DNA of 64,000 bases from Mobula hypostoma (Eukaryota): the NCBI RefSeq assembly GCF_963921235.1, contig NC_086128.1:15562001-15626000 (forward strand), read 5' to 3'. Below, piece by piece: positions 1 to 41,419 of the stretch. Under the pieces are notes generated by a model that was not told the DNA's origin, did no database searches, and saw only the letters and a list, made by a program, of their open reading frames with translations. Position 1 is the stretch's first letter; each line of letters starts with the position of its first letter. The position numbers were made by a program, and so were the translations under genes.

Positions 1-597
1 TGTTTTTTTTTTCATTCATTTACAGAAAGTGAACATCCTACAGGAAATAAATATATTTTCAGAACAGCATTTATTCTTTTGAATTATTTAGATGCCTAAC
101 TACCACCAATATCTGAAAGTTTTAAGGGCCCTTGAAAACATCAGTAGCCAAAACGCCATCAGGGTGGTTCTCTGGCAGGGCCTTTGTTTCCACTGTCTAC
201 ATCCTGTGGCCTGCTCCATCTTACGTAACAGCTACAAAAGGGAGACTGCCAGGACTAGTGAGCTGCGTGGTACGTAGACACTGCGCAAGAGATGAATGTG
301 AAGTGCAGACCAGCTCCAGCATCCACTGACTCGGTCAAACATATGGGATGGGAAGAGGATGAGAAAGTGGAGCTGAGGCCAAGATCAGGCAGCCATGATA
401 CTGTAGAATTGTGACCCTGTAGTGACAGAGACTGGGAGGAGACATGTGGACATGACAGAGGGTTGCAGATGGTGGGATCTGATAGGAGATGAAGGTGAAA
501 CATGGAACCGAATAAGGGAGGTGGGGAGGGCAGTATGGTGGAAGTTCCAGGTGTCAGGGAGCATGAAATGTGTGAAGTTTTGAGGAAGTAGAGAGGC

Positions 598-1460: not shown

Positions 1461-1950
1461 TTTTAAACTACCCATAGGGAATATGAGGTGCTGTTCCTCT
1501 AGCATGATCCTAGCAATTCAGGAGTCCAGGGCAGTCAGGTCGGTATGGGAATTCGGAGGGCAAGTAAAATGACCGGGAACCGGGAGCTGCTTCCAAAATG
1601 TCCCAGCATGCCTTGCAATGCTGGAGATACTCTGAATCTACCACCTACCTGTACAATGTATCTCAACCACCGTGGGTCAGGTGGGTTGGGCAGTCAAACT
1701 GACACTTAATGGTCGTTTCTCCGCTCTTGATCGGCGTTGCTTGAGCAACTGGAGGGAGCTCTTCTTGTTTCCCGGACTCGCTCATTCTTGCTGACGCCAG
1801 TTTGGCCCGAGGCACCGAGAGCGGTTACCGTGCACAAGCGGACAGGTTGGAACCCATGGGAGAGGGTGTGCCGAGCTCCTCCTCTATCTCGATGTCACCA
1901 TGCCCATTTCTGTCAGCTGACACCCCGACCAAGCCCAGATCCGCACTGCT

Positions 1951-1957
1951 CATAAAA
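1951..1957 (+). promoter_or_regulatory. TATA-like box (CATAAAA) of gene A
   Basis: About 100 nt upstream of the ATG (Kozak-like CACCATGA) in a CpG-rich region, with CACCC-type boxes upstream. Confidence 0.6.
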
Positions 1958-2052
1958 GCAGCTCAAAGCCGCTCTCACCTGCGCCAGCAGTTCAGATCGG
2001 GACTGATCGCTCCAGCAAACTCGTAACCAGAGAACAAAACTCTAATTTCACC

Positions 2053-5000
2053 ATGAGCGTCCCTTACACCCAAAGGTCCTTTAGACAGACCACGCAGCTT
2101 TCAGGCGGCCCATCGATGCGGTCTAGTGTTGCCGGCTCCGTGGGGTCGTCGCGAAGAATTAGTAGCAGAAAGGCGATGAGTGTGTCTGGAGCTGGAATTG
2201 GAACAGGTATCGGAGGGTCAAGACGTATGCTTTCTGGCTCATCGATCAAGCTTAGTTCAGGCTACAATTCAGGTTACGGTTCAGGTTTAAGGTCAAATTT
2301 CAGTTCTAGTTCGATGATGCCGGCCCTTGATCTAAGCGCCCCACTACCACAAAATGACACCAGTCTGCAACAAGTTCGTATGCAGGAAACGAGGGAGCTG
2401 ACTACGCTCAACAACCAGTTCGCAAGTTTCATAAACCAGGTACCGTACCGTATCCAGCTCTGTCTGTAACCCGCTGCTGCGCCTGTCTTGGCAGCATTGT
2501 GCAAATGTCTCTTTTCACTTCCTCGCCAGCTCAATGCAAAAATCTAAGCGTGTGTTCATTCCTCACCCGCAGGTTCGCCTTCTCGAACAGCAAAATGCTC
2601 AGCTGAAGGTCAAACTGGAGCTTCTGAAGAGGCAGGGGACCTACACCTCCAACATCGATAACATGTTCCAAACTTACATTGACAACCTCAAGAGGCAACT
2701 GGAAACTCTTGGGCAGGAGAAGCTGAAGTTCGAATCGGACCTTGTGCAGATGCAAGGTCTAGTTGAGGACTTTAAGGGCAAGTAAGTGTACTGTCTCCCA
2801 CCAGGATTTCCCAACTCGTCCCGTATCTGTTCACTGGTTCAGAGAAAAAAAAAGAGCGGAATCGGGCAAATCGTGGGCGGGGTAAACGTTCGAACAATTC
2901 CCGGTTACAATCAGCTATTTTCCATTGGGTTTCTTTGTAACCTAACAGCAGCTAGTGGAGGTCTGGAAGCTGGGTCGGGCAAGTGCCCGTCGGGGAGAGC
3001 TCCGTTAAGACTGAGGTCTGGATAGAGAGGTGTCACTCAGAGCTCAGGGAGTCACCGAAATAGCCGTCAGTTCAGGGACGGCAGCGTATGTTGTTTCATT
3101 CCGTCGAGGCGCGGCACGGTCGACCTGTCTGGCGTAGCGGGATGCTGTGTCTTGCGGAATCAAATGTCAGGAAGAGCGGTGCACACACGGGGATAAATAG
3201 AAGTGTGAGGAAATCATGGCTAAGCAGCAGGGAGCAGGGAGTTCCGACAACCAGCATGGCCCTGTCGAAGAAATGGGACAGAAATGTTGATTTCCAAGGG
3301 ATTGCCAGTAACGTCAGTGGTTCATTTCAGATACGAAGATGAAATTAACAAGAGAACTGAAATGGAAAACGAGTTTGTCATGGTGAAGAAGGTGAGCACT
3401 ATTTTCTAGCTCTCTGCAGGACCATATCAGTGGTCTTCAATAGATTTACAAACCTTGTGCCCTACTCTCTCCAGGATGTTGATGAATCCTACATGAACAA
3501 GGTGGAATTGGAAGCAAAACTAGAAAGCCTGACTGATGAAATTGAATTCCTGAAGACAATCTTCCAAGAGGTAAATATGCTACATGGTGCAAGAGCCTTC
3601 TGGTCCTTTTGCTGTTCAATTCCATCTCCTTACACTAGTTTTGCTCTGCCCATCTTTAGGAAATCCGTGAGCTGGAGTCACAGATTCAGAACACTGCTGT
3701 CAGCGTGCAGGTGGACACTAGCCGCAACCTGAACATAGACCAGATCATCAGTGAAGTCAAGGCCCAATACCAAAGTATGGCAGATAAATGCCGTGATGAT
3801 GCCGAGAACTGGAAAAAGGCGAAGGTGAGCTCCAGCTCCAGCCCCACGTAGAAGTGCATTGATAGCTCTGACCTCTGTGCTGGGAGGAGAAACCCTTACT
3901 GACGTCTACCAGTGTCTCCTTGCAGATGGTGGAACTCAGCACAATGCCTGGAGGTCATGCGGAAGAAGTGCGAGTGATCAAATCGGAGTGTAATGATCTG
4001 CAGAATCGCATCCGTAAGCTGACTGGGGACATCGAGTATCTGAAGCAGCAGGTAAGTCAGGAAGTGAAAGCAAACAAGAGATCTTGGTTGCGGCCTAACG
4101 ACGGTAGCAAAATGTCTTTCCTCTCAAGTCCCGAGTTCTAATGCAGCGACACGACCCAAATGGTCAATAATTCTTTTTGCCTTCACGGATGCTACTTCAC
4201 CCGCTGATCTTCTGCAGTAGTTCTGCTATTTTCTTACTCCAGACTGCAGCATCTGCCGTCTCTTGCATCTGCACTTTTCTCTTCCCAGCCCAAAGCAAAT
4301 GACCAAGAGACAGCTGAAACACAGGTCAATCTGAGCTAAATCATACACTGGGGAACTTTCAGTAGTAACAACCTGGCTGGTTCCTTCCACTGTAACCCTG
4401 GTGAACTCGATTACTCCTAAGCCAATCTGCAATACTCTACTCTCAGTATGGCTCTTTCCGATAGCAGGGTGGGGATGTTGGCAAGGCTTCATGTTATAAT
4501 CTGCAAAAATGTCCACACTAACCTCTGTGTGACTCAGCGTTTGAAACTGGAGGCTGCGATCGCTGAAGCAGAGGAACGTGGCGAGATGTCTCTCAAAGAC
4601 AGTAAACAAAATATCGTTGATCTGCAAGAAGCCATCAGGAAAGCAAAACAGGAGATTGCCAAGCAAACTCGTGAAATCGACGAGCTGATAAATGTCAAGC
4701 TGGCTCTGGATATCGAAATTAACACCTACAGTAAACTACTGGCGCAAGAGGAAATCAGGTAGGGCTTTGGTCTTTTCCAAGTTGCAGATATCACACTGGG
4801 TTGATGCCACAGTCCTGCGTACTTGCAGATTACAATCTGTACAGGCTCTTTATTGCACTCTTCATTCCTAGAGTCTTTGTCTTTAATGGGGCATTTGGTC
4901 CAGGGAGCGGCACTTACTTTTGTTTAAAGGCTGGTTTTCATCTGACCCCAGAAATACATCAGACTCACTCTCCGAATGAACATCTAGTCAGTGATTCAGT

Positions 5001-8000
5001 CACCACTAGGTGAACTCTCCCCTGATGCTGCAGTGGATGAAGCATTGTACAACATAAGCAGGCTGACGAATAGCTCCCTGCGCACACTGACGAGGCTACT
5101 GCTGTTCACCAGCAGCACTGGAACTTACAGAATCAGTGTCTCGGGCAAGGCTCGACAGAGTCAATGTGCCCATCAACTTCACCCATGCAGCTCATTGCTG
5201 CTTTCAGAAGGAAACCCTTGGTAACTTGAAAAAGATATATTTCTGAACATCCTAGAAATGGCTGTTGTTACACAAGTGTTTCCTTTATCAACAGGATGGT
5301 AGAAGGCGTCAAAACCCTCAGCGTCCAACAAGTTTCACAGCAAGGTAAGAGAACGTATAATCCTTGCTTGAGATTTTAACTACTGACCAAAACACAAAAC
5401 GCAAAATGAAAAATGGAATATTCTGGAAATATTCTTCGTTCTTCTCCAAGTCTTGATACCTCATTGTTCTGTTTACAAATCATTCTGTTGTACATTTTCA
5501 GAGCAGTGGTACTCATTTCTGTGATTGTATTTCTTATGAATGTTTTCCAAATGATTTTCCTGAATTGATATCATCAATGGTTCACTGTCCTTTGTTGCTC
5601 TCTTCTCCCTTTCACATGCTCTAAAATTACTCTTCCCAAAAAAGGCTCACATTTAACATTTCCTTCTTATAAATCAACACCCTCTTTGACATCTTTCTGT
5701 TGCCTTCAGTCCTCAAATGTCCCGTTGCGTCCTAAATTGGGGTTGAATGACACCCTGACACCCCATACGATTGTGACCATGGTCAGCAATGCCTCTTTGT
5801 CCTTTCTTTACCTGTCTGCAACAAAAGATGCCATTGCTTGTTTAATCATCGTCCAATGATAGGAAACAGCTTCTTACCCCAGGCCATAAGACGAATGAAT
5901 TCCCTGCCACCTCTCAGGTCTCATCACACATGAAGCACCAGTAGCGTTATACTGTTTACTTTTTAACTTGTGTTGTCAATGCACCCTTATTATTTGTTAA
6001 TTTATTTGTGGCTATATTACTTTATGTGTTCTGTGCCAGTTGTATATACCATGTTGTGCACTTTGGTAGGAGTACTGTTTCGTTTGGCGGTATACATGTG
6101 TACGATTGAATGACAATAACCTTGAACTTGAACAATGCTTCACCTTTGAATAGTCCTTCCCTGTTCTCATTTGGTAGGCAGATTATTTCCTATAATCCAA
6201 AGTCTGCAAAGGCCTATTTCTCACCTATGATCATGATCTCAGTGATAGCATCCAAAACCGAGCATCGCATTCCTCTGATACTGTGAAAAAATGCAGATGC
6301 TACAAATATGAAATTTAAAAATTACACTGGAAATACGCAGCAGGCCAGGTAGCATCCAAGGGAAGAGCAATAGAGTCAATGTTTCATGTCAAAAGTCGCT
6401 CATCAGAACTGAGAAAGAAAGAAAGTAAGAGTTTTAAGTTGCCAGGAAGGTGGGGGACAGGTCAATAGGACCAAGGGAGTATCTCAGATAGGGGGAAGCC
6501 AAGATTGCTATTTAGATAAGTTGTTGGCGTCACCCAGTCGACGGGTTAATCGGGGCAGTTAGAGAGTGAGAATACAAAGAGAGGAGCTTGACAAGGTGTG
6601 AAATGTCAGGCTGTCTGACGTGTCCAGTCGGCCAGGCCTACTTTTAAAGTGAGGTAAATCAGTGTGCAAATAGAGGAATTAAGTTCCCTTATGTCGCCGT
6701 ACTCAGTTTCAAGTGGAGAAGGCAGCAACATGGCCCAGACAGAAAATGAGTTGCAAAGCGCATGTTGGTCCTCCTTATATCAGCATATTATAAATTGAAT
6801 ATTAGAAATTGAAGCCACAGACAGAGGTCAGAGTGGGAGATGGATGGAGAGTTAAATAGGCAACAAAAGGGAGCTTTGGTCACTCCTGGTGCTCTGCAAT
6901 GTTGTCACTCCGTCTGCAGCTGGTGGAGGAAACCACACTGTGAACACTGAGTGCAAGACACTAGATTGAAAGAAGTGCAAGTGAATTGTTGCTCCAACTT
7001 GAGGGACTGTTTGCATCCCCAGACACTGGGAAGGAAAGAGGTGAACGGACAGGTGTAGCATCTCCTGTAATTTCACAAAACACGCAGTGACATTGGGATA
7101 GAAGACAGTTGCCCAGGGAATCACAAAGGGAACAGTCTCGTTTACATGATGAAAGGCAGGGAAGGTATGGACGTATCCAGTTGTGGAATATTGTGGAAGC
7201 TGGTGCAAATTGTAAAGGATGAGCTGTTAAACACTGAGCTGGTGAGGTGGAAGATAATGACTAGAGGATCTCTGTCCTTGCTCTGTCTGACAGGTGAGGG
7301 ATGGAGAGCAGAGATGCAGGAAATAGATGAACTACGGCCAAAAACTCCATTGACTGTGGTAGAGGAGAAAGTACAGGTCATGGTAGAAGTCATTTTAGAA
7401 ACACATGAAAGTCTTTAACAATTCCTGCAATAAGTTTATTTTCAATCAAAGCTACCGTAGTCTTAGTGGCCACTCTTATTAGGTACCTGCTCATGGTCTT
7501 CTGTTGCTGTAGCACATCCACTTCAAGGTTTAACCATTATGTGCCTTTCAGATGCTCTTCTGCACACCACTGTTGTGACACGTAGTAATTTGAGTTACTG
7601 TCGTCTTCCTGTCAGCTTCAACCAGTCTGGCCTTTCTCCTCTGACTTCTCTCATCAACAAGGCTTTTTCACTCACAGAACTTCCACTCACTGATTGTCCT
7701 TGTTTTGTGTACCATTCTCTGTAAACTCTAGAGACTGTTGTGCACGAAAATCCCAGGAGACCAGCAGTTCTTGAGATACTCAAATTATCCCGTCTGACAC
7801 CAACAATCATTTGGGTCAACGTCACTTCGGTTACATTTCTTCCCCCATCTGATGTTTGATCTGAACAACTGAACCTCTTGAACATGTCTGCATGCCTTTG
7901 TGCACTGAGTTGCTGCCACATAATTGACTGATTAGATATTTGCATGAGCCAGCAGGTGTACAAGGTGTGCCTAATAAAGAGGCCACTGAATGTATGTTGT

Positions 8001-9263
8001 CCATTTTATAAATTATTCTACCCCCCATCATCTTTTGTGCTCACTGACTTATAGAAACATAGAAAATAGGTGCAGGAGTAGGCCATTCGGCCCTTCGAGC
8101 CTGCACCACCATTTATTATGATCATGGCTGATCATCCAACTCAGAACCCCGCCACAGCCTTCCCTCCATACCCCCTGACCCCCGTAGCCACAAGGGCCAT
8201 ATCTAACTCCCTCTTAAATATAGCCAATGAACTGGCCTCAACTGTTTCCTGTGGCAGAGAATTCCACAGATTCACCACTCTCTGTGTGAAGAAGTTTTTC
8301 CTAATCTCGGTCCTAAAAGGCTTCCCATCTATCCTCAAACTGTGACCCCTCGTTTTGGACTTCCCCAACATCGGGAACGATCTTCCTGCATCTAGCCTGT
8401 CCAATCCCTTTAGGATCTTATACGTTTCAATCAGATCCCCCCGTCAATCTTCTAAATTCCAACGAGTACAAGCCCAGTTCATCCAGTCTTTCTTCATATG
8501 AAAGTCCTGCCATCCCAGGAATCGATCTGGTGAACCTTCGTTGTACTCCCTCTATGGCAAGGATGTTTTCCTCAGATTAGGGGACCAAAACTGCACGCAA
8601 TACTCCAGGTGTGGTCTCACCAAGGCCTTGTACAACTGCAGTCGTACCTCCCTGCTCCTGTACTCGAATCCTGTCGCTATAAATGCCAGATAAATGCTAT
8701 AAATATTGGCTCCTAAACTGATATACCTCAGTTTTAGGATCTGAGTCTTCAAATCTTTCCATAGCATTGATCTTCCCTATCTCTGTAAACGACTCTGCAC
8801 ACCCTGAGCCATGACTGATGGGATGCCACTCATGGATAAGTAGTTCCTACATTTCAGTGATTTCTTTCTCAAAATTTCATTTCCACCTTTTTTCTCTTTC
8901 CTGTAAAATTTATCATTTCAAAATGCTTTGATATATCTGTATACATAAAATCTTAGAGTCAAGCATTTGCTTACTAAAAGTTACCTGAAGCACTTGGGGC
9001 TGTCTTTCTCTGTTAAGATTGCGACCTGCTTGATGTCATTGCAATTGTTTTCTCAATTTCAGGATCCATATTCTAAAGTGTCTTTTTCCTTTCCTCTCCC
9101 TTTTACAGGAAGTTTTGGGGATTTCAGCAGCGCAAGTAGTGGTATGTCTGGCTACCTCAAAGGGGGCAGTGAGATGGAAACTGGTGGAAAAAGAGCAGTA
9201 ATTCTGAGCTCAGTGCAGCAGACCTCTACAAGCAGAAGTGGATCTTCAATCAATCAGTTATAA
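2053..9263 (+). CDS. Type II keratin (K8-like), gene A; 9 exons, 489 aa
   Basis: Exons 2053-2439, 2573-2781, 3331-3391, 3475-3570, 3660-3824, 3926-4051, 4538-4758, 5295-5344, 9109-9263. All introns are GT-AG and the joined frame is open (1470 nt). Exons 2-7 are 209/61/96/165/126/221 nt as in type II keratins. Motifs [67 protein letters not shown]. Confidence 0.92.
5865..6133 (+). mobile_element. Rex1/Babar-type LINE 3' tail
   Basis: Encodes the ORF end [12 protein letters not shown], then a 3' UTR ending in (cttgaa)n. Confidence 0.5.
6280..7400 (-). mobile_element. Degenerate Penelope-like element in gene A intron 8
   Basis: [29 protein letters not shown] aligns with ISRTSALTPSSRHPTRNRVPLVLTYHPTS of the younger copies. 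Decayed hammerhead at about 6373-6410. Confidence 0.7.
7460..7992 (-). mobile_element. Non-autonomous Tc1 derivative
   Basis: TA-flanked TIRs (agtggccactcttattaggtac / cctaataaagaggccactga). Transposase HTH remnant [33 protein letters not shown]. Confidence 0.85.
8052..8692 (-). mobile_element. Young 5'-truncated CR1 LINE
   Basis: [27 protein letters not shown], (ttctatgt) tail. Very similar to 52035-52698. Confidence 0.9.
9109..9263 (+). CDS. Gene A terminal exon 9 (tail [15 protein letters not shown]...[24 protein letters not shown])
   Basis: Long polypyrimidine tract plus CAG acceptor at 9106-9108. Phase fits exon 8. Gly/Ser-rich tail, AATAAA at 9605. Confidence 0.85.
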
Positions 9264-9604
9264 ACTACTGTCAGTTATGTCTCTGGTGACTCTCTTGCCA
9301 GTTTTTATACTTCATTCACATAGCCTGTTCAGTGAAGTGGTTAACTTGTTTAGATTAACTTTCTGCCTGATCTTGGAATTCTACTCAATTTTACATCGTT
9401 AAGCAACATGAAATTAACTGATACACAGCAAACGTCAAGTTAGTCTGTAACTTGGGTTTGTGGGAAAAGTGGAAAGTTCATCCTTTACTTCTTGGGCCTT
9501 TGAATATAGGAAATTAATCAAAGTTTTAGATGTGGTGCTCTGATTTGTGATTTTGACTCACTTTATGTTGGGGATTTATCTTTTGTGGCATTTCTGTAAT
9601 ACTG

Positions 9605-9610
9605 AATAAA
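9605..9610 (+). terminator. Poly(A) signal of gene A
   Basis: AATAAA about 340 nt after the stop codon, followed by T-rich sequence. Confidence 0.6.
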
Positions 9611-9865
9611 CTGAAATTTTTGAATCTGCCAATCTGGACTCTTTCTTTCCTTAAGCACATTATTCAAGTACTGAAAAGAGAAACCATCATACCTTTGTCA
9701 GAAATTCAAGAACTTTGAAATAATTTGTAAGTTAGAGGAAGGTTACTGAAAAAAACATAAAATATGTCTAAAACTATCACACAAGTCCAAGCATAGCAGC
9801 CAGCTAGCTCCTCCTTCACCAAAGAAGTTACTTTTACATTGTCTTAGAGAACATATTTATCGACT

Positions 9866-10132
9866 TATTGAGATACAGCGCGGAACAGGCCCTTTGAGCC
9901 CTTCAAGCCATATTGCCCAATTTTTAACACTAGCCTAATCATGGGACAATTTACAATGACCAATTAACCTACCGACCTGTACGTCTTTGGACTGTGGGAG
10001 GAAACTGGAGCACCCGGAGGAAACCCACGCGGTCACAGTGAGAACATACAAACTCCTTACAGGCAGTGGCGGGAACTGAACCTCAGTTGTCTACACTGTA
10101 AAGCATTGTGCTAACAACTGCACTACAGTGCC
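9866..10132 (-). mobile_element. tRNA-derived V-SINE (HE1-like)
   Basis: Minus strand has a tRNA-like head, the V-domain gcgtgggtttcctccgggtgctccagtttcctcccacagtccaaagacgt, and a CR1-like tail. Confidence 0.8.
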
Positions 10133-10444
10133 ATTGGAATCTGATAAAAAAATTTTAATCGCATGAATATTCTCCTTTCTCTCAAGAGTTCTGAGCATCG
10201 TAAAGGCTGCCCAGTTGAAAGGTATAGTGAGAGACACAAAGGATCAGAACAATCCCATGGGAAACAGTCCAAGTTGAATGAGGAAAGTAACCTTCATCTA
10301 TGGGCAGTGAGCGTCCTGGATGAAACAGTCTCTCACCTGTTTCAAGTTAGTATAGGCCTGCAATTTCCAATCTCCAGTTTACAAGAAGAACTACAAAGCA
10401 TATCCATAGAAAGTGATAGTACAAGAGATTAGGGTAATAAAATA

Positions 10445-11870
10445 GGTGTAGGTTATGCTTGCCTTCATTGGTCAGGGTATTGAGTTAAAGTTGGCAAATC
10501 AGTTGTAGCTACACAAAACTTTGGCTAGGCCACATTTGGAGTATTTTGTCCCATTCTGGTTTCTGCACTGCAGGAAGAATGGAAGGACTTTGGACCGAGA
10601 ATGTATAAGAGATTCGCCAGGATGCTGTATGGATTGGAGAGTATTCGATGTGTTGGTGGCTGAGGGGGCGACATGATAAAGAGTATATAAAATTATGAGA
10701 GGTAAAGATCGGGTAACTAATCAGAGTTTTTTACCAGGTGGAAATGTCAAATATTGGAGGACATACGTAGATTTAAGGTGAAAGTAGGAAAGTTTAAAGA
10801 AAATGTACAAGTCAGGTTCTTTATACAGAGAGTGGTGGATGCCTAGAATGTGCTGAAACACTGGTTGTTGGAAGTAGACAGGATATGAACATTTTAGAAC
10901 CACTTATGCAGCCACGTGAACAGGCAGGGAATGTAGACAATTTGCAGGAAGATAGGATGAATTGAAAATTGGAAATCACTAACAAAACAAATTACAACGG
11001 GAGATAAACAAGGCATCTCAAAGGGCAAAGTGACAATAGTCAGATTTCAATATGCAGATAGATTGGGAAAATCAAGTTGATGCTGGATTCCAAGAGAGGA
11101 TTTGTAGATTGCGGACAAGATGGCCCTTTTAAAGAATGTGGTGCTTGAGCCCACTAGGGAAAAAGGCTATTCTGGAATGGGTTTTGTGTAATGAACCAGA
11201 TTTGATGAGGAAGCTTAAAGTAAAGGAACCCTTATGAGACAGTGATCATAATATGATAGAATTCACCCTGCAATTTGAGAGGGAGAAGCTAAAGTCAGAT
11301 GTATCAGTATTCCAGTGGAGTAAAGGGAATTACAGAGGCATGAGAGGGGTGCTGGCCAAAGCTGATCGGAAGGAAACATTAGCAGGGATGACGGCAGAGC
11401 AACAATGGTTAGAGCCTCTGGGAGCAATTTGGAAGATACAGGACAGATACATCCCAAAGAAGAAATATTCTAAAGGCAAGTGGCTGACAAGAGAAGTCAA
11501 GGCCGACATAAGAGCAAAACACAGGGCATATAATAGAAGGAAAATTAGTGGGAAACTTGAGGAGTGGGAAGCTTTCAGAAATCAACAGAAGGCAACTAAA
11601 ATAGCCATAAGGAGCTAAAAAATGAGCTACAAAGGTAAGCTAGCCAACAATATCAAAAACGATATCAAAAGTAGCCTCCCATAGTGCGTGAGTCTCAGAG
11701 CAGAGGGTATACACTCAGGATAGAGGGACGTCCATTTAGAATGAAGATTAGGAGAGATTTCTATAGCCAGGGGGTGGTGAATCTGTGGAATTTGTTGCCA
11801 TAATTGGCTGTGGAGGCCAGGTCATCAGGTGTATTTAAGGTGGGGGTTCATAGATTCTTGATAACTCAGA
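10445..11870 (+). mobile_element. Cluster of degenerate CR1 fragments
   Basis: SDHNMIEFTLQFERE...WLTREVKA (EN-RT linker) plus two 3' RT remnants. Confidence 0.75.
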
Positions 11871-11893
11871 GCATCCAGATAGTATGTTTTATA

Positions 11894-12598
11894 TGTAAGG
11901 GGTTTCTTCTTTTATGTCTTCTTTTATGGCTTCTTTGTTATGTTATAATTAAAATGGCTTCTTTGTTATGTTAAATGCTGAGAAAGTTCTCTCGCTCACA
12001 GCTTGTTTGGGTTATCATGTTGATAAGAGAACAAATGAACCAGTGGGCATCCACGTTATTCTTTCTAGTGTGTCTGTAAGTTATTATGATGCGTGGGTTT
12101 TTGGGGAGAAGGCGCGATGGACACAGAGAGGATGGACAATCTGCTGTGAGCTGGCTAACGGGGTCGGACCCGAGCAGGAGTCCAAGGTCGGGGGTCTTCG
12201 GTGAGGAGAGGAGACGGCGACAGACTCGTGTGGAGCGTCTGGTCGACCACCGTGGTTGGTCCCAGGCGGCACGTCGGAGTGGTCAGAGGGGAACGAATGG
12301 TGAAGAGAGGATCGTTACTAGAGCTCCAACTGTTTGTGCATGAAGAGATTGAACTTTGATAAGTGTGGCGCCTTTTATTTCCTTTTTATATTTTATGTCT
12401 ATTCATTATATAGTTCCAGTAATCTCTATAAACTGTCATTCATTTTATCATATATGGTGTATTGTCTGTTATTTGGCGGGGTGGGGTACATCACACAGCA
12501 TCCACGAAAACTTAATTACCCAGTTTGGCGGGGCCGAGGGCTGTTTCCCGAGATGACAGAAAGTTGAGCGACCCTAAGGCTTGCCAGGGGGGCTTACA
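11894..12598. mobile_element. Solo LTR (probably Gypsy)
   Basis: Ends TGTAAG...CTTACA, 705 bp, flanked by TATA/TACA (4-bp TSD with 1 mismatch), no internal coding sequence. Confidence 0.72.
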
Positions 12599-13906
12599 TA
12601 CAGAATCTGTGCAAATTGGTGAGGGTCATCAGGGACATGCTGAGGTTCCTTAGAATTCTGAGGAAGTAGAGGCACTAATGTGCTTTCTTGGCTGTATCAT
12701 CCACGTAGCTGAGCCAAGACAAATTGTCGGTGATAAGAACACCTGGTCATTTGAAACTCCCAACCATCTCCACTACAGCACCATTGATAGACATGGGTGT
12801 GTTCTCCACCCCACTTCTTGAAGTCATTGAAAGATCAAACACATTATTGGGATGTGACTGCAGCATTATCAAAGGTTCCAGTGCCCTAAATTTAGTAAAG
12901 TACACAGAGTGGAAGTTGCATACGATTGCTTTTAACTGGAGTAGCTATTGCACATCTAACTCTGCTCCAGCTTGCACATTTGGTGCCTCTCTGAGTCATA
13001 CCTCAGCCATATTTATAAACTCGATTCTGGCCAGGTGCTTAATCATACCCCATTCACCCATTTACCTCCCGGCCATTTTCTGACTGCACGTTGCAGGACC
13101 ATGTTCATATCGATGTTTCCTGCCCACATCCAGCTGCATACATGGCCCAGTTCCCAGCTTTGTCCTTGGGCGTGAAGGAGGGAGTCAATATCCCTGCTGT
13201 CATTAATGTAAGGTTCTGTTCTCAGCAATTTGCTGAGGATCGATGGCTAAGCCAGAAGTAGGTGAGCTTGGCAAGTTAGTAGTTGCCATCTTGAGCATGG
13301 TTAAAGCTATATATGCAGCTGATCGTCCCCCACCATCAGCTTCTCTGTGATCTTCTCTGCCAATAATTCACTAATGGCAGTGTAAGTGGCTTTTTGAGGG
13401 CAAACAGATCATCTGTTGGAATCTCACCATGGATTATGCAACTTGACAGCAAGAGATGAAATACTGCAGATCATGAAGTAACGTGCATAATCCTGAGCAC
13501 AAATAAAGCTGATGCCTTGAGAAAACCAGGATAGTGATTCTAGGGCCTTGTACCAAAATCTCCAACTACACACTACTGATTTCCCAACAATATCCTAAGC
13601 CTGGTTTCATCTTCTGAATTAAGCATAGAAAATAAAGTGCCACTGCTATCTAAATGTCAACAACAATACTTTCATTATTGAGATTGGCAAAATACATACA
13701 ATAAATGTGTACAAATTCCATGTGTTTGCTAGGTGAAAATGTATTGTCAACCTTGAACCTGATTTGTCAACCTGTATTGCACTTGCTCTGTAATATTCAT
13801 GTCACGGTCCCGGCCGTCCCTTCTATTTATTCCTGATGTTCTCCAAATTCCCTTTTCCCGCGTGTTTCTCCAGCTCCCCGTCTGTGTGTGTGTGTTTGTG
13901 TGTGTG

Positions 13907-14970
13907 CAACACACATCAAAGTTGCTGGTGAACGCAGCAGGCCAGGCAGCATCTCTAGGAAGGGGTGCAGTCGACATTTCAGGCCGAGACCCTTCGTCAG
14001 GACTAACTGAAGGAAGAGTTAGTAAGAGATTTGAAAGTGGGAGGGGGAGGGATGGAGCCAAGAGCTGCACAGTTGATTGGCAAAATGGATATGAGAGGAT
14101 CATGGGACAGGAGGTCCGGGGAGAAAGACAAGGGGTGGGGGAAACCAGAGGATGGGCAAGGAGTATAGTGAGAGGGACAGAGGGAGAAAAAGGAGCATGC
14201 GAGAAAGAATGTGCGTATAAAAATAAATAACAGATGGGGTACGAGGGGGAGTTGGGGCATTAGCGGAAGTTAGAGAAGTCGATGTTCATGCCATCAGGTT
14301 GGAGGCTGCCCAGACGGAATGTAAGGTGTTGTTCCTCCAACCTGAGTGTGGCTTCATCTTTACAGTAGAGGAGGCCGTGGATAGACATGTCAGAATGGGA
14401 ATGGGATGTGGAATTAAAATGTGTGGCCACTGGGAGATCCTGCTTTCTCTGGCAGACAGAGCGTAGGTGTTCAGCAAAGCGGTGTCCCAGTCTGCGTCGG
14501 GTCTGGCCAATATATAGAAGGCCACATCGGGAGCACTGGATGCAGTATATCACCCCAGCCGACTCACAGGTGAAGTGTCACCTCACCTGAAAGGACTGTC
14601 TGTGGCCCTGAATGGTGGTAAGGGAGGAAGTGTAAGGACACGTGTAGCACCTGTTCCGCTTACAAGGATAAGTGCCAGGAGGGAGATCAGTGGGGAAGGA
14701 TGGGGGGGACGAATGGACAAGGGAGTCACGAAGGGAGCGATCTCTGCAGAAAGCAGAGAGGCCGGGGAGGGAAAGATGTGCTTAGTGGTGGGATCCTGTT
14801 CGAGTTGGCGGAAGTTACGGAGAATAATATGTTGGACCTGGAGGCTGGCGGGGTGGTAGGTGAGGACCAGGGGAACGCTATTCCTAGTGGGGTAGCGGGA
14901 GGATGGAGTAAGAGCAGATGTACGTGAAATGGGGGAGATGCGTTTGAGAGCAGAGTTGATAGTGGAGGAA
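13907..14970 (-). mobile_element. Penelope-like element, 3' part (GIY-YIG endonuclease and pLTR)
   Basis: IYCIQCSRCGLLYIGQTRRRLGHRFAEHLRSV...[23 protein letters not shown]. Confidence 0.93.
13969..14004 (-). ncRNA. Minimal type I hammerhead ribozyme motif (Penelope)
   Basis: Minus strand reads AGUC-CUGACGA-AGGGUCUCGGCCU-GAAAU-GUC-GACU. Confidence 0.7.
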
Positions 14971-14998
14971 ATAAGTAAATGTTCTTGGCGTTTGTGTA

Positions 14999-15002
<4 letters not shown>

Positions 15003-15030
<28 letters not shown>
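15003..15030. repeat. (TG)n microsatellite
   Basis: Read directly from the sequence. Confidence 0.9.
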
Positions 15031-15464
15031 AGATTGTGTGTCGGCACGGTGGGCGTGGCGTTCCTTTTGTTCTCCCGGGCTTCCTGATTGCGGCGTACCT
15101 GAATCTCATCTAACCTGCAGAATAAGTACCCCGGCTTTCCATCCACTCATCGCCAGATCGTTGCTTCAGCCAGTGTGCTAGTTCACGTCCTAGGCCGCTT
15201 CCAATTGTGTATTCTAGATTTTCTTTCCACGCTGTTGTCTGCCGGTGTCAACTCTGTCTCTCTGTGTCAGTGCCTTGAATTTGGGTTCACCCGTTCGCCT
15301 CAACAATTCTGTATTCCTTTTGTACTACCTCGAAATTATTACGTTTGGATACCCTGTCTGGATGGCGTGCAAAGCAAAAGCATTTCTCTATATCTTCTCA
15401 GTACATGTGACAATATCAAACCAATAACTTGCACGTGTACTACCATCAGCTCATATTGGAAGCT

Positions 15465-15632
15465 ACTGAGCCAATAGGCTGGTCCTGGACTTATTTCATA
15501 ATTTACTGGCATAATTTACATATTACTATTTAAATATTTATGGTTCTATTACTATTTATTATTTATGGTCCAACTGTAACAAAAACCAATTTCCCCTGCG
15601 ATCAATAAAGTATGACTATGCCTATGACTATT
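15465..15632 (+). mobile_element. Rex1/Babar 3' UTR fragment with (tatgac)n tail
   Basis: Homologous to 38888-39047, 41228-41418 and 26383-26560 (minus). Confidence 0.7.
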
Positions 15633-17939
15633 ATTAGCTTCCAAATGAGACCAAATTGGAGAGGACCTGCTGCATTGTGCATCTGAAGAGAATTTGACGC
15701 CAAGCAGCTCAGCATGGTTGGAGAAAACACAGACACCCAGACATTGTCTTTACTTCCCACAAAGAAAGTGGCATTGTGATCGCACAAAAAGAAAATCACA
15801 CTTTCGGAATTCTCCAAGATCTGTTGTTAGATCTATTGGACATCAGGTGCCCTTGATCAAATCCAAGCAGAAATGTCATTGGAGGCATATTAGACAGTTT
15901 TGCAACACATATAGAGGCAAATATGAAGCATGTTCAACTTGTGACCTCAGTCAACTGCTTCGCCAAATCGGTAATTAAAGCACAGGGAAAGCTTGTGAGG
16001 GAAGATATATGCTACATTAGCCAATTGGCATAGCTTTTCCAAATTGTAGCAAGAGGGTAATAAAAGGCAACAATTCTGATGGACACAGAGAGACAAAGAC
16101 AATAACATATAATAGGCAAGAATTGTGAACATCTTTGTGCGGTATCATGAATAATGCACTAACCTGGAAGACCTCTGTCCTGGTAGAAAACTCCAAACAT
16201 TTCTTTGGAACCCGAGATACTTTGTAAACATGGGTTGCAATGTTTTTTACAGTTTCAAATATATTTATACAAACAATGTTGATTAACAACTTAAAAAAAA
16301 TGTATTGACCTTCTAGGGTATGTGCTTTCTGTTTAGAAATCTTTATATCTCCTTGATGTGTCAATCATGGTGCATAATAACAAATTGCACCATTTCAAGT
16401 TCAAGTTAATGGAATTCACACAGCCATCTCCATTTATGAAATGTTGCTTGAAAAAATGCTTTTCAGGGTCAAATCCCTTTCATTAGACAATCACTACCTA
16501 TATTCTGACACATAAATTGATGCGATTAAGCATTAACACTGATCAGTCGTATTGGAGTATTTCAGCATAAATTTACAGCAAATGAAGCATTTGTAGTGTT
16601 GCACCCGTCAGGAGAAACAATTTTTTTTCTGTAGTTAGCAATTTTCATCACACGCAGCTGAGTTCTTGCACCAACGAGTGGGTTCCTCTGAAACCCAGGT
16701 TTCAGACCGACCTGAATGAGGACATGAAGTCCAGGAGGTTTCTCACATTCTTTCCGACCCCTGTGCCACAAAACCATCAAGTACGGTAAATATATGATGG
16801 TATTGCATCAGTTAACAAGATAATCCTTTTGAGACAGCAGAAAATAATGTTTGCTGAAAATTCTATACATCTAAGAGAATTACCGCATAATGGTCTTTGG
16901 GCCCTTAGCATTTCTCCGGAATAATGATGCAACCAGTTACTCTCTGTCAACGTGAGAAAATCTGCAGATGCTGGAAATCCTGAAGAAGGGTTTCAGCTTG
17001 AAATATCAACTGTTTACTCCTTTCCGCAGATGCTGCCTGCTGAGTTCCTCCAGCATTTTGTGTGTGCAGTCCTCTGTCAACACTGTTCCTCTGCCTGGCA
17101 GAGCATGTCCTTACCCTTAATAACTTCTCTTTTGATTCCTCCCACTTTCCACAAGCAAAGGTGTAGTCAAGGGCACACTCATAGGCCCCAGCTAAGGCTA
17201 CATGCACCAGTCCTTACTCCAAAGCTACTCTGGCCTTTCAGCCTACACGAGCATAGAGGTTTCACCTAGCAGGACCGCAGTCATTTTAATTGTGCTGCTT
17301 CCCTTCATTAAAATGACAACTTTGCTTACTTTAGTGAATATTTGTATTTTTTTTCATTCATTTACAGAAAGTGAACATCCTACAGGAAATAAATATATTT
17401 TCAGAACAGCATTTATTCTTTTGAATTATTTAGATGCCTAACTACCACCAATATCTGAAAGTTTTAAGGGCCCTTGGAAACATCAGTAGCCAAAACGCCA
17501 TCAGGGTGGTTCTCTGGCAGGGCCTTTGTTTCCACTGTCTACATCCTGTGGCCTGCTCCATCTTACGTAACAGCTACAAAAGGGAGACTGCCAGGACTAG
17601 TGAGCTGCGTGGTACGTAGACACTGCGCAAGAGATGAATGTGAAGTGCAGACCAGCTCCAGCATCCACTGACTCGGTCAAACATATGGGATGGGAAGAGG
17701 ATGAGAAAGTGGAGCTGAGGCCAAGATCAGGCAGCCATGATACTGTAGAATTGTGACCCTGTAGTGACAGAGACTGGGAGGAGACATGTGGACATGACAG
17801 AGGGTTGCAGATGGTGGGATCTGATAGGAGATGAAGGTGAAACATGGAACCGAATAAGGGAGGTGGGGAGGGCAGTATGGTGGAAGTTCCAGGTGTCAGG
17901 GAGCATGAAATGTGTGAAGTTTTGAGGAAGTAGAGAGGC

Positions 17940-18802
17940 TACAGAAGGACAGACAGATTAGGAGAATAGACAAAGAAATGGCAGATGGAACACAGTTTGG
18001 GGAAGTGTATGGTCATGCACTTTGGCAGGAAAAAATGAAAGGGTTGACTATTTTCTAAATGGGGAGAAAATAGAAAAAACTGAGATGCAAAGGGACTTGG
18101 GAGTCCTTGTGCAGGATTCCCTGAGGGGTAACTGGCAGGCTGAGTCTGTGGTGAGGAAGGCAAATGCAATGTTGGCATTCATTTCAAGAGGACGAGATTA
18201 TAAAAGCAAGGTTGTAATATTGAGACCTTATAAAGCACTGGTGATGCCTCACTTGGAATATTGCGAGCAGTTTTGGGCCCCTTATCTTAGAAAGGAAGTG
18301 CGGAAACTTGAGAGGATGCAAAGATCGCTCACACAAAAGATTTCAGGATTAAACGCTTGTCATATGAAGAATGTTTGATGGCCTGGGCCTGTATTCACTG
18401 GAATTCAGAAGAACGAGGAGTCACCTCATTGAAACCTATCAAATGGCGAAAGACCTTGATAGAGTGGACGTGGAGAGTATGTTTCCTATGATGGGAGAGT
18501 CTAAGACCAGAGGACACAGCCTCAGAATAGAGGGGTGTCCTTTTAGAATGGAGGTGAGGAGGAATTTCTTTAACTAGAGTGGTGTATCTGTGGAATTCTT
18601 TCCCACAGACAGCTGTAGAGGCCAAGAGTTTACGTATATTTAAGGCAGAGGTTGATAGATTCTTGATTGGTCAGAGCATGAAGGGATTTGGGGGCAGATG
18701 GGCAGGAGACTGGGGCTGAGAGGAAAATTGGATCAGCCATGATGACATGGCGGAGCAGACTCGATGGGCCAAATTCCCTAATTCTGCTGCTATATCTTAT
18801 GG
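17940..18802 (+). mobile_element. CR1 LINE fragment (duplicate of 598-1460)
   Basis: Identical translation. Confidence 0.88.
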
Positions 18803-19292
18803 TTTTAAACTACCCATAGGGAATATGAGGTGCTGTTCCTCTAGCATGATCCTAGCAATTCAGGAGTCCAGGGCAGTCAGGTCGGTATGGGAATTCGGAG
18901 GGCAAGTAAAATGACCGGGAACCGGGAGCTGCTTCCAAAATGTCCCAGCATGCCTTGCAATGCTGGAGATACTCTGAATCTACCACCTACCTGTACAATG
19001 TATCTCAACCACCGTGGGTCAGGTGGGTTGGGCAGTCAAACTGACACTTAATGGTCGTTTCTCCGCTCTTGATCGGCGTTGCTTGAGCAACTGGAGGGAG
19101 CTCTTCTTGTTTCCCGGACTCGCTCATTCTTGCTGACGCCAGTTTGGCCCGAGGCACCGAGAGCGGTTACCGTGCACAAGCGGACAGGTTGGAACCCATG
19201 GGAGAGGGTGTGCCGAGCTCCTCCTCTATCTCGATGTCACCATGCCCATTTCTGTCAGCTGACACCCCGACCAAGCCCAGATCCGCACTGCT

Positions 19293-19299
19293 CATAAAA
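19293..19299 (+). promoter_or_regulatory. TATA-like box (CATAAAA) of gene B
   Basis: Identical copy of 1951-1957. Confidence 0.6.
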
Positions 19300-19394
19300 G
19301 CAGCTCAAAGCCGCTCTCACCTGCGCCAGCAGTTCAGATCGGGACTGATCGCTCCAGCAAACTCGTAACCAGAGAACAAAACTCTAATTTCACC

Positions 19395-22300
19395 ATGAGC
19401 GTCCCTTACACCCAAAGGTCCTTTAGACAGACCACGCAGCTTTCAGGCGGCCCATCGATGCGGTCTAGTGTTGCCGGCTCCGTGGGGTCGTCGCGAAGAA
19501 TTAGTAGCAGAAAGGCGATGAGTGTGTCTGGAGCTGGAATTGGAACAGGTATCGGAGGGTCAAGACGTATGCTTTCTGGCTCATCGATCAAGCTTAGTTC
19601 AGGCTACAATTCAGGTTACGGTTCAGGTTACGGTTCAGGTTTAAGGTCAAATTTCAGTTCTAGTTCGATGATGCCGGCCCTTGATCTAAGCGCCCCACTA
19701 CCACAAAATGACACCAGTCTGCAACAAGTTCGTATGCAGGAAACGAGGGAGCTGACTACGCTCAACAACCAGTTCGCAAGTTTCATAAACCAGGTACCGT
19801 ACCGTATCCAGCTCTGTCTGTAACCCGCTGCTGCGCCTGTCTTGGCAGCATTGTGCAAATGTCTCTTTTCACTTCCTCGCCAGCTCAATGCAAAAATCTA
19901 AGCGTGTGTTCATTCCTCACCCGCAGGTTCGCCTTCTCGAACAGCAAAATGCTCAGCTGAAGGTCAAACTGGAGCTTCTGAAGAGGCAGGGGACCTACAC
20001 CTCCAACATCGATAACATGTTCCAAACTTACATTGACAACCTCAAGAGGCAACTGGAAACTCTTGGGCAGGAGAAGCTGAAGTTCGAATCGGACCTTGTG
20101 CAGATGCAAGGTCTAGTTGAGGACTTTAAGGGCAAGTAAGTGTACTGTCTCCCACCAGGATTTCCCAACTCGTCCCGTATCTGTTCACTGGTTCAGAGAA
20201 AAAAAAAGAGCGGAATCGGGCAAATCGTGGGCGGGGTAAACGTTCGAACAATTCCCGGTTACAATCAGCTATTTTCCATTGGGTTTCTTTGTAACCTAAC
20301 AGCAGCTAGTGGAGGTCTGGAAGCTGGGTCGGGCAAGTGCCCGTCGGGGAGAGCTCCGTTAAGACTGAGGTCTGGATAGAGAGGTGTCACTCAGAGCTCA
20401 GGGAGTCACCGAAATAGCCGTCAGTTCAGGGACGGCAGCGTATGTTGTTTCATTCCGTCGAGGCGCGGCACGGTCGACCTGTCTGGCGTAGCGGGATGCT
20501 GTGTCTTGCGGAATCAAATGTCAGGAAGAGCGGTGCACACACGGGGATAAATAGAAGTGTGAGGAAATCATGGCTAAGCAGCAGGGAGCAGGGAGTTCCG
20601 ACAACCAGCATGGCCCTGTCGAAGAAATGGGACAGAAATGTTGATTTCCAAGGGATTGCCAGTAACGTCAGTGGTTCATTTCAGATACGAAGATGAAATT
20701 AACAAGAGAACTGAAATGGAAAACGAGTTTGTCATGGTGAAGAAGGTGAGCACTATTTTCTAGCTCTCTGCAGGACCATATCAGTGGTCTTCAATAGATT
20801 TACAAACCTTGTGCCCTACTCTCTCCAGGATGTTGATGAATCCTACATGAACAAGGTGGAATTGGAAGCAAAACTAGAAAGCCTGACTGATGAAATTGAA
20901 TTCCTGAAGACAATCTTCCAAGAGGTAAATATGCTACATGGTGCAAGAGCCTTCTGGTCCTTTTGCTGTTCAATTCCATCTCCTTACACTAGTTTTGCTC
21001 TGCCCATCTTTAGGAAATCCGTGAGCTGGAGTCACAGATTCAGAACACTGCTGTCAGCGTGCAGGTGGACACTAGCCGCAACCTGAACATAGACCAGATC
21101 ATCAGTGAAGTCAAGGCCCAATACCAAAGTATGGCAGATAAATGCCGTGATGATGCCGAGAACTGGAAAAAGGCGAAGGTGAGCTCCAGCTCCAGCCCCA
21201 CGTAGAAGTGCATTGATAGCTCTGACCTCTGTGCTGGGAGGAGAAACCCTTACTGACGTCTACCAGTGTCTCCTTGCAGATGGTGGAACTCAGCACAATG
21301 CCTGGAGGTCATGCGGAAGAAGTGCGAGTGATCAAATCGGAGTGTAATGATCTGCAGAATCGCATCCGTAAGCTGACTGGGGACATCGAGTATCTGAAGC
21401 AGCAGGTAAGTCAGGAAGTGAAAGCAAACAAGAGATCTTGGTTGCGGCCTAACGACGGTAGCAAAATGTCTTTCCTCTCAAGTCCCGAGTTCTAATGCAG
21501 CGACACGACCCAAATGGTCAATAATTCTTTTTGCCTTCACGGATGCTACTTCACCCGCTGATCTTCTGCAGTAGTTCTGCTATTTTCTTACTCCAGACTG
21601 CAGCATCTGCCGTCTCTTGCATCTGCACTTTTCTCTTCCCAGCCCAAAGCAAATGACCAAGAGACAGCTGAAACACAGGTCAATCTGAGCTAAATCATAC
21701 ACTGGGGAACTTTCAGTAGTAACAACCTGGCTGGTTCCTTCCACTGTAACCCTGGTGAACTCGATTACTCCTAAGCCAATCTGCAATACTCTACTCTCAG
21801 TATGGCTCTTTCCGATAGCAGGGTGGGGATGTTGGCAAGGCTTCATGTTATAATCTGCAAAAATGTCCACACTAACCTCTGTGTGACTCAGCGTTTGAAA
21901 CTGGAGGCTGCGATCGCTGAAGCAGAGGAACGTGGCGAGATGTCTCTCAAAGACAGTAAACAAAATATCGTTGATCTGCAAGAAGCCATCAGGAAAGCAA
22001 AACAGGAGATTGCCAAGCAAACTCGTGAAATCGACGAGCTGATAAATGTCAAGCTGGCTCTGGATATCGAAATTAACACCTACAGTAAACTACTGGCGCA
22101 AGAGGAAATCAGGTAGGGCTTTGGTCTTTTCCAAGTTGCAGATATCACACTGGGTTGATGCCACAGTCCTGCGTACTTGCAGATTACAATCTGTACAGGC
22201 TCTTTATTGCACTCTTCATTCCTAGAGTCTTTGTCTTTAATGGGGCATTTGGTCCAGGGAGCGGCACTTACTTTTGTTTAAAGGCTGGTTTTCATCTGAC

Positions 22301-23715
22301 CCCAGAAATACATCAGACTCACTCTCCGAATGAACATCTAGTCAGTGATTCAGTCACCACTAGGTGAACTCTCCCCTGATGCTGCAGTGGATGAAGCATT
22401 GTACAACATAAGCAGGCTGACGAATAGCTCCCTGCGCACACTGACGAGGCTACTGCTGTTCACCAGCAGCACTGGAACTTACAGAATCAGTGTCTCGGGC
22501 AAGGCTCGACAGAGTCAATGTGCCCATCAACTTCACCCATGCAGCTCATTGCTGCTTTCAGAAGGAAACCCTTGGTAACTTGAAAAAGATATATTTCTGA
22601 ACATCCTAGAAATGGCTGTTGTTACACAAGTGTTTCCTTTATCAACAGGATGGTAGAAGGCGTCAAAACCCTCAGCGTCCAACAAGTTTCACAGCAAGGT
22701 AAGAGAACGTATAATCCTTGCTTGAGATTTTAACTACTGACCAAAACACAAAACGCAAAATAAAAATGGCAATTTTTGGTTGGACTTTGATCACTCCTCA
22801 GTTGTAATGAGAAAAGAAAGGCTGGCATTTCACATTCTCACCTTTCCATTAGTTGTGAATACTGATTGATTGTTTTTCAATCTTGAACTCATTATGTTCT
22901 ATTTTTCAGAGGTTTCTGGTTCTGATCAGTATTTCCAGCATTGTCTGGCTTCTTTTATCAATTATTATTAAAACAGATAAAAATTCTGTACATACAGCAG
23001 TCTGAAATTTTAATTCAGCACCCTTGAAGGAAATATCACGTAAACCTTTGAATCTTAAAAATAAGCTGTATTTGTCACATATACATCAAAACAGAGAGAG
23101 AGATGCATCGTTTGTGTCAAATCACATCAGTAAGGATTGTGCTGAGGGCACAAGTTTTGCCATGGTTGTGGCGCCCACATGCCACGCCAACAACTTACTA
23201 ACTCCAACTGTAATGTGTTTGGAGTGTGGGAGAAACCCAGGATACCAGATGAAAAGCCATCAGCATCACAGAGAGAACGTACAAACTCCTTACAGCAATG
23301 GGAATTGAGCCCCGATCAGTGAGAGCTGGCACTGATTGCGCTAACTGCTAGACTACTGTGCTACCCTATTATTAAGGCAGTTATACTTAATGACAAGATC
23401 AACAACTGTTTAGCGATGGCTGAAGAAGCCATTTCTTCTCATACTGTTTTGGATAAGTTCTTTGCAGTTTTCAAAGTGCTGTTGCAAATGTATGAAGGAT
23501 ATTGAATAATTTTCATGAAAGAATCATAAGTGTTAAATTTGAATATTTAAAATATAGGTAACTATGGCAACTCCGCTTATCAGAGTGGTCTGGGTGCAAT
23601 GGAAACGTCTCGCATCGCAGGACAACGAACAGAATCCTCTAAGAACATACTGGTGAAAACAGTGGAGCAGTTGGATGGTGTTACAGTTTCATCAACAATA
23701 AGTGCTTTGCAATAA
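19395..23715 (+). CDS. Type II keratin (K8-like), gene B; 9 exons, 494 aa
   Basis: Exons 19395-19793, 19927-20135, 20685-20745, 20829-20924, 21014-21178, 21280-21405, 21892-22112, 22649-22698, 23558-23715. Exons 1-8 match gene A apart from a 12-nt insertion in the head; exon 9 is its own. Confidence 0.9.
23045..23363 (-). mobile_element. Degenerate V-SINE in gene B intron 8
   Basis: Head and V-domain align with 9960-10132; the 3' tail differs. Confidence 0.6.
23558..23715 (+). CDS. Gene B terminal exon 9 (tail [15 protein letters not shown]...[24 protein letters not shown])
   Basis: TAG acceptor at 23555-23557 with a weak pyrimidine tract and correct phase. [11 protein letters not shown] resembles the K8 C-terminal VVVKKIETRDG motif. 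AATAAA at 24146. Not in the ORF track. Confidence 0.82.
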
Positions 23716-24145
23716 TGAATTATGAGTCTTGAGCAACTAAACCATTTTATTTCCTTCTCTTGTTCATTTGCCATCTTTATTTGAGAGTTCAGTTCTGTTA
23801 ATTCTAGCTTTGCAAATTTAGAGAATTGTTCATTTTTTAAATGCTGGCACTGTAAAATCCCTTGCATATGTCTTGAGATCTCTGTTAGGGAGTGACTGGT
23901 CCAATATGCTGATATTCTTCATTATTGATCAATCTATTAGATAAACACAGGCTATACAAACCAATAGATTCACATGAATTGTGCAATGTAATTTCAGTAA
24001 CAATATATTGGATGAAATTTTGAATAGCTAAGAAGCGGTATATTATAGTGTTAAGATGTGAATGATTTAGTAAATGCTTGACTTGCTGTCACTTTGGTTC
24101 TGAGAGATTGACAACAAGATGCAAATGTGTAGAGGTAGGTTTCAG

Positions 24146-24151
24146 AATAAA
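24146..24151 (+). terminator. Poly(A) signal of gene B
   Basis: AATAAA about 430 nt after the stop codon, with GT/T-rich sequence downstream. Confidence 0.55.

Positions 24152-41383: not shown

Positions 41384-41419
<36 letters not shown>

Follow-up and report, generated by a model that had tools for sequence, protein, structure and literature searches.

The 64,000-nucleotide stretch of Mobula hypostoma DNA analysed here (assembly GCF_963921235.1, contig NC_086128.1, forward-strand positions 15,562,001 to 15,626,000; hereafter the window, from whose first letter all positions are counted) contains the last two genes, A and B, of a tandem array of keratin 8 (K8)-like type II keratin genes, X–A–B. 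The two have the same promoter, head and rod, and differ in the last exon, which encodes one of two tails, tail A or tail B. The reading that we favour, with a probability of about 0.8, is that the array is ancient and consists of n units of a body (head and rod) with tail A followed by one of the same body with tail B, the promoter, head and rod having been homogenised by gene conversion or unequal crossing-over and the tail exons having stayed outside the homogenised tract.

Gene models were built from landmark peptides and splice sites and give, for each gene, nine exons with open frames and with introns that are all GT–AG. The coding span of gene A (2053–9263, plus strand; exons 2053–2439, 2573–2781, 3331–3391, 3475–3570, 3660–3824, 3926–4051, 4538–4758, 5295–5344 and 9109–9263) encodes a K8-like type II keratin of 489 residues ending in tail A, identical to the M. 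hypostoma protein XP_062892979.1 (P0271). That of gene B (19395–23715, plus strand; exons 19395–19793, 19927–20135, 20685–20745, 20829–20924, 21014–21178, 21280–21405, 21892–22112, 22649–22698 and 23558–23715) encodes 494 residues, which have the head and rod of A plus one extra four-residue head repeat and end in tail B; the protein is 100% identical to XP_062893074.1 (P0159) of M. hypostoma. Both are entered as "keratin, type II cytoskeletal 8-like", and the closest full-length relatives carry the same name.

Self-BLAST of the window, which contains no N and no gaps, gives one outstanding repeat, 1–5426 against 17343–22779, at 99.67% identity over 5439 columns. In the base-by-base alignment copies A and B show just three differences up to position 5407: T/A at position 4, A/G at position 135 and a 12-nt indel, which is an insertion at 19610–19621 (plus strand) in exon 1 of B relative to A and adds one SGYG-type unit. 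Across 136–5407 there is not a single mismatch between the copies, introns included, and then five mismatches fall within 5408–5426, beyond which homology is lost. Copy A of the homogenised block (1–5407, plus strand) thus takes in at least 2 kb of upstream sequence, the promoter with a TATA-like CATAAAAG near 1957, exons 1–8, introns 1–7 and the first 63 nt of intron 8, and bar the three differences it equals copy B (17343–22761, plus strand). The match is already under way at the first base of the window, so its upstream end lies outside. The initial annotation had the two genes matching from more than 2 kb upstream through exon 8, introns included, and in this it was correct.

It also had them use different exon 9s, 3' untranslated regions (UTRs) and poly(A) sites, and this too is what we find. 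Intron 8 is 3764 nt long in gene A and 859 nt in gene B. Its A-specific part (5408–9108, plus strand, 3.7 kb) contains repeat copies at about 7491–8689 and is without homology to intron 8 of B, of which the B-specific part is 22762–23557 (plus strand). Exon 9A (9109–9631, plus strand) encodes the 51 residues of tail A, with the stop at 9261–9263, and then a 3' UTR with AATAAA at 9605. Exon 9B (23558 to a putative end at 24220, plus strand) encodes the 52 residues of the K8-like tail B, with the stop at 23713–23715, and a 3' UTR with AATAAA at 24146 and 24199. The tail peptides, at 9108–9260 (A) and 23557–23712 (B), are each single-copy in the window. A sensitive DNA search of 5345–17342 against 22699–30000 found, beyond the boundary, shared repeats only, including Penelope-like retroelements.

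Both exon 8–9 junctions are transcribed, as had been supposed, since RNA contigs cross from exon 8 into 9A and into 9B. Contigs of RNA and DNA from two species were mapped on 3701–9700; runs X1 (RNA) and X15 (DNA) are M. hypostoma, and the second species was taken as M. birostris from its degree of likeness (its DNA shares about half of the 31-letter words), X5 being its RNA run. The tail-A junction, 5342/5344 to 9107/9109 (GT..AG), is present in X1 at a depth of 754, the shared exons 5–7 having a depth of ~1420–1470; in X5 the figures are 83 for the junction and 162 for the shared exons. An RNA contig covers 9107–9631 and ends 20 nt past the AATAAA at 9605. Another contig of X1 passes from exon 8 into 24 letters found only at 23562–23585, the start of exon 9B. 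Tail A is therefore on about half of the transcripts in both Mobula runs, contig depth being a rough measure, and by subtraction the remaining half would carry tail B.

The clearest single result comes from comparison with Pristis pectinata, in which 23 kb separates the starts of the A and B genes and a block of 3911 nt, common to both at 99.4% identity, begins 409 nt before the ATG and extends 85 nt into intron 8. The boundary in intron 8, at +63 in Mobula and +85 in Pristis, is thus within ~25 nt of the same position. In a four-way alignment of exon 8 and the following 220 nt, the paralogues before the boundary are identical within Mobula and within Pristis and the species differ, and directly past the boundary the partners change, A of Mobula aligning with A of Pristis and B of Mobula with B of Pristis. 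This pairing by type persists through intron 8 and exon 9 at 74–81%. Within intron 8, the A-specific part matches its Pristis counterpart at 74–77% and the B-specific part at 71–81%, the latter not matching the A-type. Because the relationship switches at the boundary, the duplication and the boundary itself must be older than the divergence of the two ray orders, after which the bodies must have been homogenised independently. The homogenised tract includes non-coding sequence; introns 1–7 and the upstream region are identical in Mobula, 99.4% in Pristis and 98.3% in the skate Amblyraja.

In Amblyraja, the common block is 4596 nt long at 98.3% identity and ends ~1.1 kb into intron 8, so that both genes have an A-type proximal intron. 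At +3477 in intron 8 of the Amblyraja B gene (locus L003, ~16700–16840) the start of the B-type intron (from ~+18) survives as a relic that no exon 8 precedes. The relic lies 3.5 kb downstream of the working exon 8, and after it come the B-type intron and exon 9B. To judge from this arrangement, it is likely to be a scar left when the B body was replaced in a fusion-type event. A separate observation concerns the first 60–85 nt of intron 8 (5345–5407 in the window; TTTTAAC ... AACAAAAC ... CAAAA), which are conserved in the rays and the skate and in both gene types, as is unusual for an intron; this segment may be a splicing element.

The same arrangement is widespread. Protein relatives were collected by searching exon 7 against protein cluster representatives and then using the best full-length match as the query. 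Tail-A and tail-B proteins on species-specific bodies occur in about 13–15 other cartilaginous fishes, comprising rays, skates, sharks and a chimaera. In Hemitrygon akajei, an A-type gene is followed 8.4 kb later by a B-type gene, and their proteins differ by one residue before the tail; the A/B pair of Pristis pectinata has two body differences. Clusters at 90% identity that hold several tail-A and at least one tail-B protein were found for the skates Rhinoraja and Amblyraja, the chimaera Callorhinchus and seven sharks (Stegostoma, Hemiscyllium, Heterodontus, Heptranchias, Cetorhinus, Carcharodon and Pristiophorus). Only in Mobula, Hemitrygon and Pristis was A seen to precede B, and the number of A-type copies ranges from 1 to at least 5 among species. 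Comparing A with B within each of 13 species, the bodies are 95.5–100% identical and the tails 26–45%, whereas bodies compared between species are 57–79% identical. No parent gene with the same tail on a different body was found among these relatives; every tail-A or tail-B gene within a species shares one body.

The Callorhinchus proteins of the two tail types, UniProt V9K... entries that we take to be cDNA-derived, have bodies at least 99% identical, and four or five rod positions vary among them in a mosaic, which suggests patchy conversion. Each tail type is present with a long and a short N-terminus (P0308, P0312, P0309 and P0317), the annotated starts being different, and the chimaera may hold several such genes.

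In the maximum likelihood body tree (454 columns), the genes group strictly by species in all 14 of the 14 species with several genes, and the 17 label changes are the minimum possible, compared with a mean of 37.5 when the labels are shuffled. In the tail tree (64 columns, weakly resolved), no A tail is paired with the B tail of its own species, and 22 of the 30 A tails fall in one clade with a support of 93 in the Shimodaira–Hasegawa-like approximate likelihood ratio test (SH-aLRT). Monophyly of the B tails is not rejected by the approximately unbiased test (p-AU 0.26), and a forced clade of lamnid A and B tails is rejected (p = 0.0006). Tails A and B of the window compared directly are not significantly similar, with a Smith–Waterman score of 36, which 121 of 2000 shuffles reach, against a shuffle mean of 26.6 ± 5.1. 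As this pairwise similarity is weak, the homology of the two tails rests on the cross-species evidence. The initial annotation regarded them as old homologues; the comparison across species upholds an ancient relationship, the pairwise alignment by itself is not significant, and the DNA lends it no support, because only repeats are shared downstream of the boundary.

The two genes had also been described as twins, which they are not, as there are at least three such genes in M. hypostoma: X and A with tail A, and B with tail B. Gene X encodes XP_062892983.1 (P0272), which has tail A and differs from A by two head residues. From the coordinates and the proteins, on which the comparison of X and A is based, gene X begins 16,424 nt upstream of gene A, outside the window, and its span is 7215 nt, compared with 7211 nt for A. 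In both an RNA and a DNA contig of M. hypostoma there is a CTGG insertion behind 6067, equal to the 4-nt difference in length between X and A, and it may identify intron 8 of X.

Intron 8 of gene A contains a 652-nt repeat (8051–8702) which is 93% identical to 52050–52689 on the opposite strand. It is skipped in a DNA contig of M. birostris, which joins 8050 to 8703. Since X is nearly as long as A, gene X probably carries this repeat as well, and this would mean that X and A were homogenised or duplicated after the split of the two Mobula species. In M. birostris we find six tail-A accessions, of which four have one identical sequence (P0158) besides P0157, and one tail-B protein; the B gene lies ~8.9 kb after an A-type gene. 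Over 962 nt of the same block, 20 substitutions and one indel separate the M. birostris orthologue from the window, and 18 amino-acid differences between the two Mobula species are common to all paralogues of each. The DNA depth of the relative is 275–286 in the shared block and 246 in the exon 9A contig, a ratio of ~1.14, as about six bodies for every five A-type tails would give, though other A-specific contigs are lower (121–172).

We suppose that interlocus recombination repeatedly overwrites a region that would begin at least a few hundred bases before the ATG and continue through exon 8 into intron 8, so that all copies in a species come to share promoter, head and rod. As the homology between A-type and B-type ends in intron 8, exons 9A and 9B would never be homogenised and would persist as two separate orthologous lineages. 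The outcome would be the genomic equivalent of an alternative last exon, that is, co-regulated transcripts with one head and rod and either tail, whose products would presumably assemble together. The presence of the same arrangement in other sharks and rays and in a chimaera indicates long-running homogenisation rather than a recent tail swap. The initial annotation proposed tail shuffling by recombination and not by alternative splicing. It was right that one body is combined with different tails in separate transcribed genes; a recent shuffle of tails is not supported, however: recombination would act on the bodies, which it homogenises, and the tails are stable lineages outside the converted tract.

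The best of the alternatives, though an improbable one, is that the B gene has been recreated repeatedly, each time through a Lepore-type deletion that fuses the last A-type unit to the old intron 8 and exon 9 of B, while A units are born and lost and short-tract conversion plays only a small part. The Amblyraja B gene, with its ~1.1 kb of A-type intron 8 and its B-type relic at +3477, looks like the product of such a fusion, and the range of A-type copy number, from one to at least five, also agrees with it. The boundary in Mobula and Pristis is clean, however, with no relic seen, every fusion deletes a unit so that equally frequent duplications would be needed, and the mosaic variants of Callorhinchus look more like patchy conversion. 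Fusion events do occur, as the Amblyraja scar indicates, and unequal exchange occurs too, since copy number differs between close relatives.

We think it less likely still that one recent event in the Mobula lineage, an unequal crossover or a segmental duplication, copied the body in front of a foreign last exon (a chimera of anti-Lepore type), the identity being due to youth. Such an event would leave, as observed, 5.3 kb without a mismatch that ends abruptly 63 nt into intron 8, and the different copy numbers of the two Mobula species indicate that unequal exchange takes place. A recent event in Mobula does not account for the A/B architecture on identical species-specific bodies in Hemitrygon, Pristis, skates, sharks and Callorhinchus, for a Pristis boundary within ~25 nt with orthology by tail right after it, or for the lack of any parent gene with the same tail and a different body. 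The idea that gene A is itself an anti-Lepore chimera with a foreign tail was dropped, as tail A is the common tail of this keratin lineage across species. That the assembly is in error, with one copy of exons 1–8 serving two alternative terminal exons, is barely credible: the depth of the shared block in X15 is no higher than that of A-specific contigs and 1:1 tail usage would also fit alternative 3' exons, but A-specific sequence is probably two-copy, so that equal depth proves little, the window is gapless, the copies differ in both flanks, by the 12-nt indel and by two substitutions, an X15 contig spanning 1436–5407 breaks off at precisely 5407, where it overlaps the following contig by 30 nt as would be expected of a true branch, the independent assemblies of Pristis and Amblyraja hold two physical copies, and the coordinates in Hemitrygon and M. 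birostris are those of separate genes 8–9 kb apart.

Several points weigh against the ancient homogenised array as we have described it. The DNA word depth in X15 is 21.2 for the shared block and 17.2–22.8 for A-specific sequence, a ratio of ~1.1 for an expected 1.5 (1.5 and not 2, because the A-specific sequence is probably two-copy, in X and A), and the mapped span, 3701–9700, falls wholly within sequence that is probably multi-copy and so has no single-copy baseline. The tail trees, with their 64 columns, are poorly resolved, and a clade of ray A and B tails is not rejected by the tails alone (p-AU 0.34). The sharks, Rhinoraja and Callorhinchus were compared as annotated proteins only. Gene conversion and unequal crossing-over are indistinguishable with these data, and the molecular mode of homogenisation that we put forward is to be read as covering either.

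The assignment to the K8-like type II keratins is based on the nine exons, the rod, the database names and the K8-like ending of tail B, which carries the motif (I/L)VK(T)VE..DG. The intermediate filament rod (Pfam PF00038) is matched by exon 2 (E 5e-13, profile positions 20–88) and exon 7 (E 8e-18, positions 242–311 of 313). The type II keratin head (PF16208) is not matched, exon 1 being without any Pfam family at E ≤ 1, and neither tail matches a Pfam family; the precomputed domains of the elasmobranch relatives are likewise PF00038 alone. Besides this lack of the head model, the Mobula genes differ from keratin 8, a type II keratin of simple epithelia, in the helix-termination motif at the end of coil 2B (4730–4758 and 22084–22112), which departs from TYRKLLEGEE, the rest of the rod being intact. 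The same altered motif is found in A, B, X, M. birostris and Hemitrygon. Elsewhere it is TYQKLLEGEE in Pristis and TYMKLLEGEE, TYGTLLQGEE, TYDSLLQGEE or TYMKILDTEE in several sharks, and to judge from these sequences it appears to be relaxed across the whole of this keratin lineage.

The remainder of the window contains another type II keratin, gene C, on the minus strand at ~39950–56880, with a canonical helix-termination motif and very long introns containing fragments of long interspersed nuclear elements (LINEs). Pristis also has a minus-strand keratin (453 residues) just downstream of its B gene, so the gene order is conserved. Three copies of a retroelement, 87–94% alike, lie at 13907–14970, 27166–28265 and 28739–29287; its longest open reading frame (27559–28644, minus strand) has a weak match to GIY-YIG, as in Penelope-like elements. 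Reverse-transcriptase fragments are found at 25342–26172, 43303–43770 and 55006–55542.

That concerted evolution can be partial, its boundary falling inside a gene, is classical knowledge. In human HBG1 and HBG2 the conversion boundary is in intron 2, and in HBA1 and HBA2 the coding and 5' parts are identical and the 3' UTR has diverged. These globin genes resemble the keratin array in being tandem paralogues with an identical 5' part, introns included, a sharp switch in an intron or at the 3' end, and interlocus conversion or unequal crossing-over. They differ in that the unconverted part of the keratin array encodes a distinct protein domain, so that the products differ, and in that the keratin arrangement is common to a chimaera, sharks and rays and hence far older than the primate examples. 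The primate paired receptors Siglec-5 and Siglec-14 are also neighbouring genes with the same front end and different tails, one domain being kept near-identical by repeated conversion and the C-terminal parts giving opposite signalling. These are cell-surface receptors with a known functional logic, however, whereas the keratins form a cytoskeletal polymer.

Among intermediate filament genes, lamin A/C and GFAP alpha versus delta/epsilon likewise provide one head and rod with alternative tails from different final exons. There the choice is one of splicing or polyadenylation in a single gene, whereas the ray keratins have a full gene copy for each tail. The near-identical human type II genes KRT6A/B/C and KRT81/83/86 are similar in being tandem members of a keratin cluster with signs of homogenisation. 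A homogenised body that carries two conserved lineages of alternative tails is not known to us from any other keratin. Concerted evolution has been described for keratin-associated protein (KRTAP) genes (bioRxiv 10.1101/282418; PMC2528016), the subject of these papers being KRTAP genes and not the keratins proper. Gene conversion is not mentioned in an account of keratin clusters in early-branching fishes (bioRxiv 10.1101/2020.05.06.063123). No published description of the present array was found in a literature search of incomplete coverage, and this keratin case of the classical process is thus one for which we have found no description.

The locus is an unusually deep and widely sampled instance of domain-limited concerted evolution, and its boundary lends itself to mapping at single-base resolution and to comparison between lineages. 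It also carries a warning for keratin phylogenies of cartilaginous fishes, as in trees of the rod the genes of one species will cluster together without being recent duplicates. If the chimaera pair is homologous to that of the sharks and rays, both tails have been kept since before chimaeras split from them. As a speculation that we think has the odds against it, a system of one body and two tails might have been kept since before that split by selection for homogenisation and for an approximately 1:1 output of tails A and B, whatever the number of A copies (two in M. hypostoma and up to six accessions in M. birostris). If there were such selection, both tails would be needed together, in fixed proportion and in the same filaments. 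The tail is the least understood part of a keratin, and two tails on an otherwise identical protein, expressed together, constitute a natural controlled comparison.

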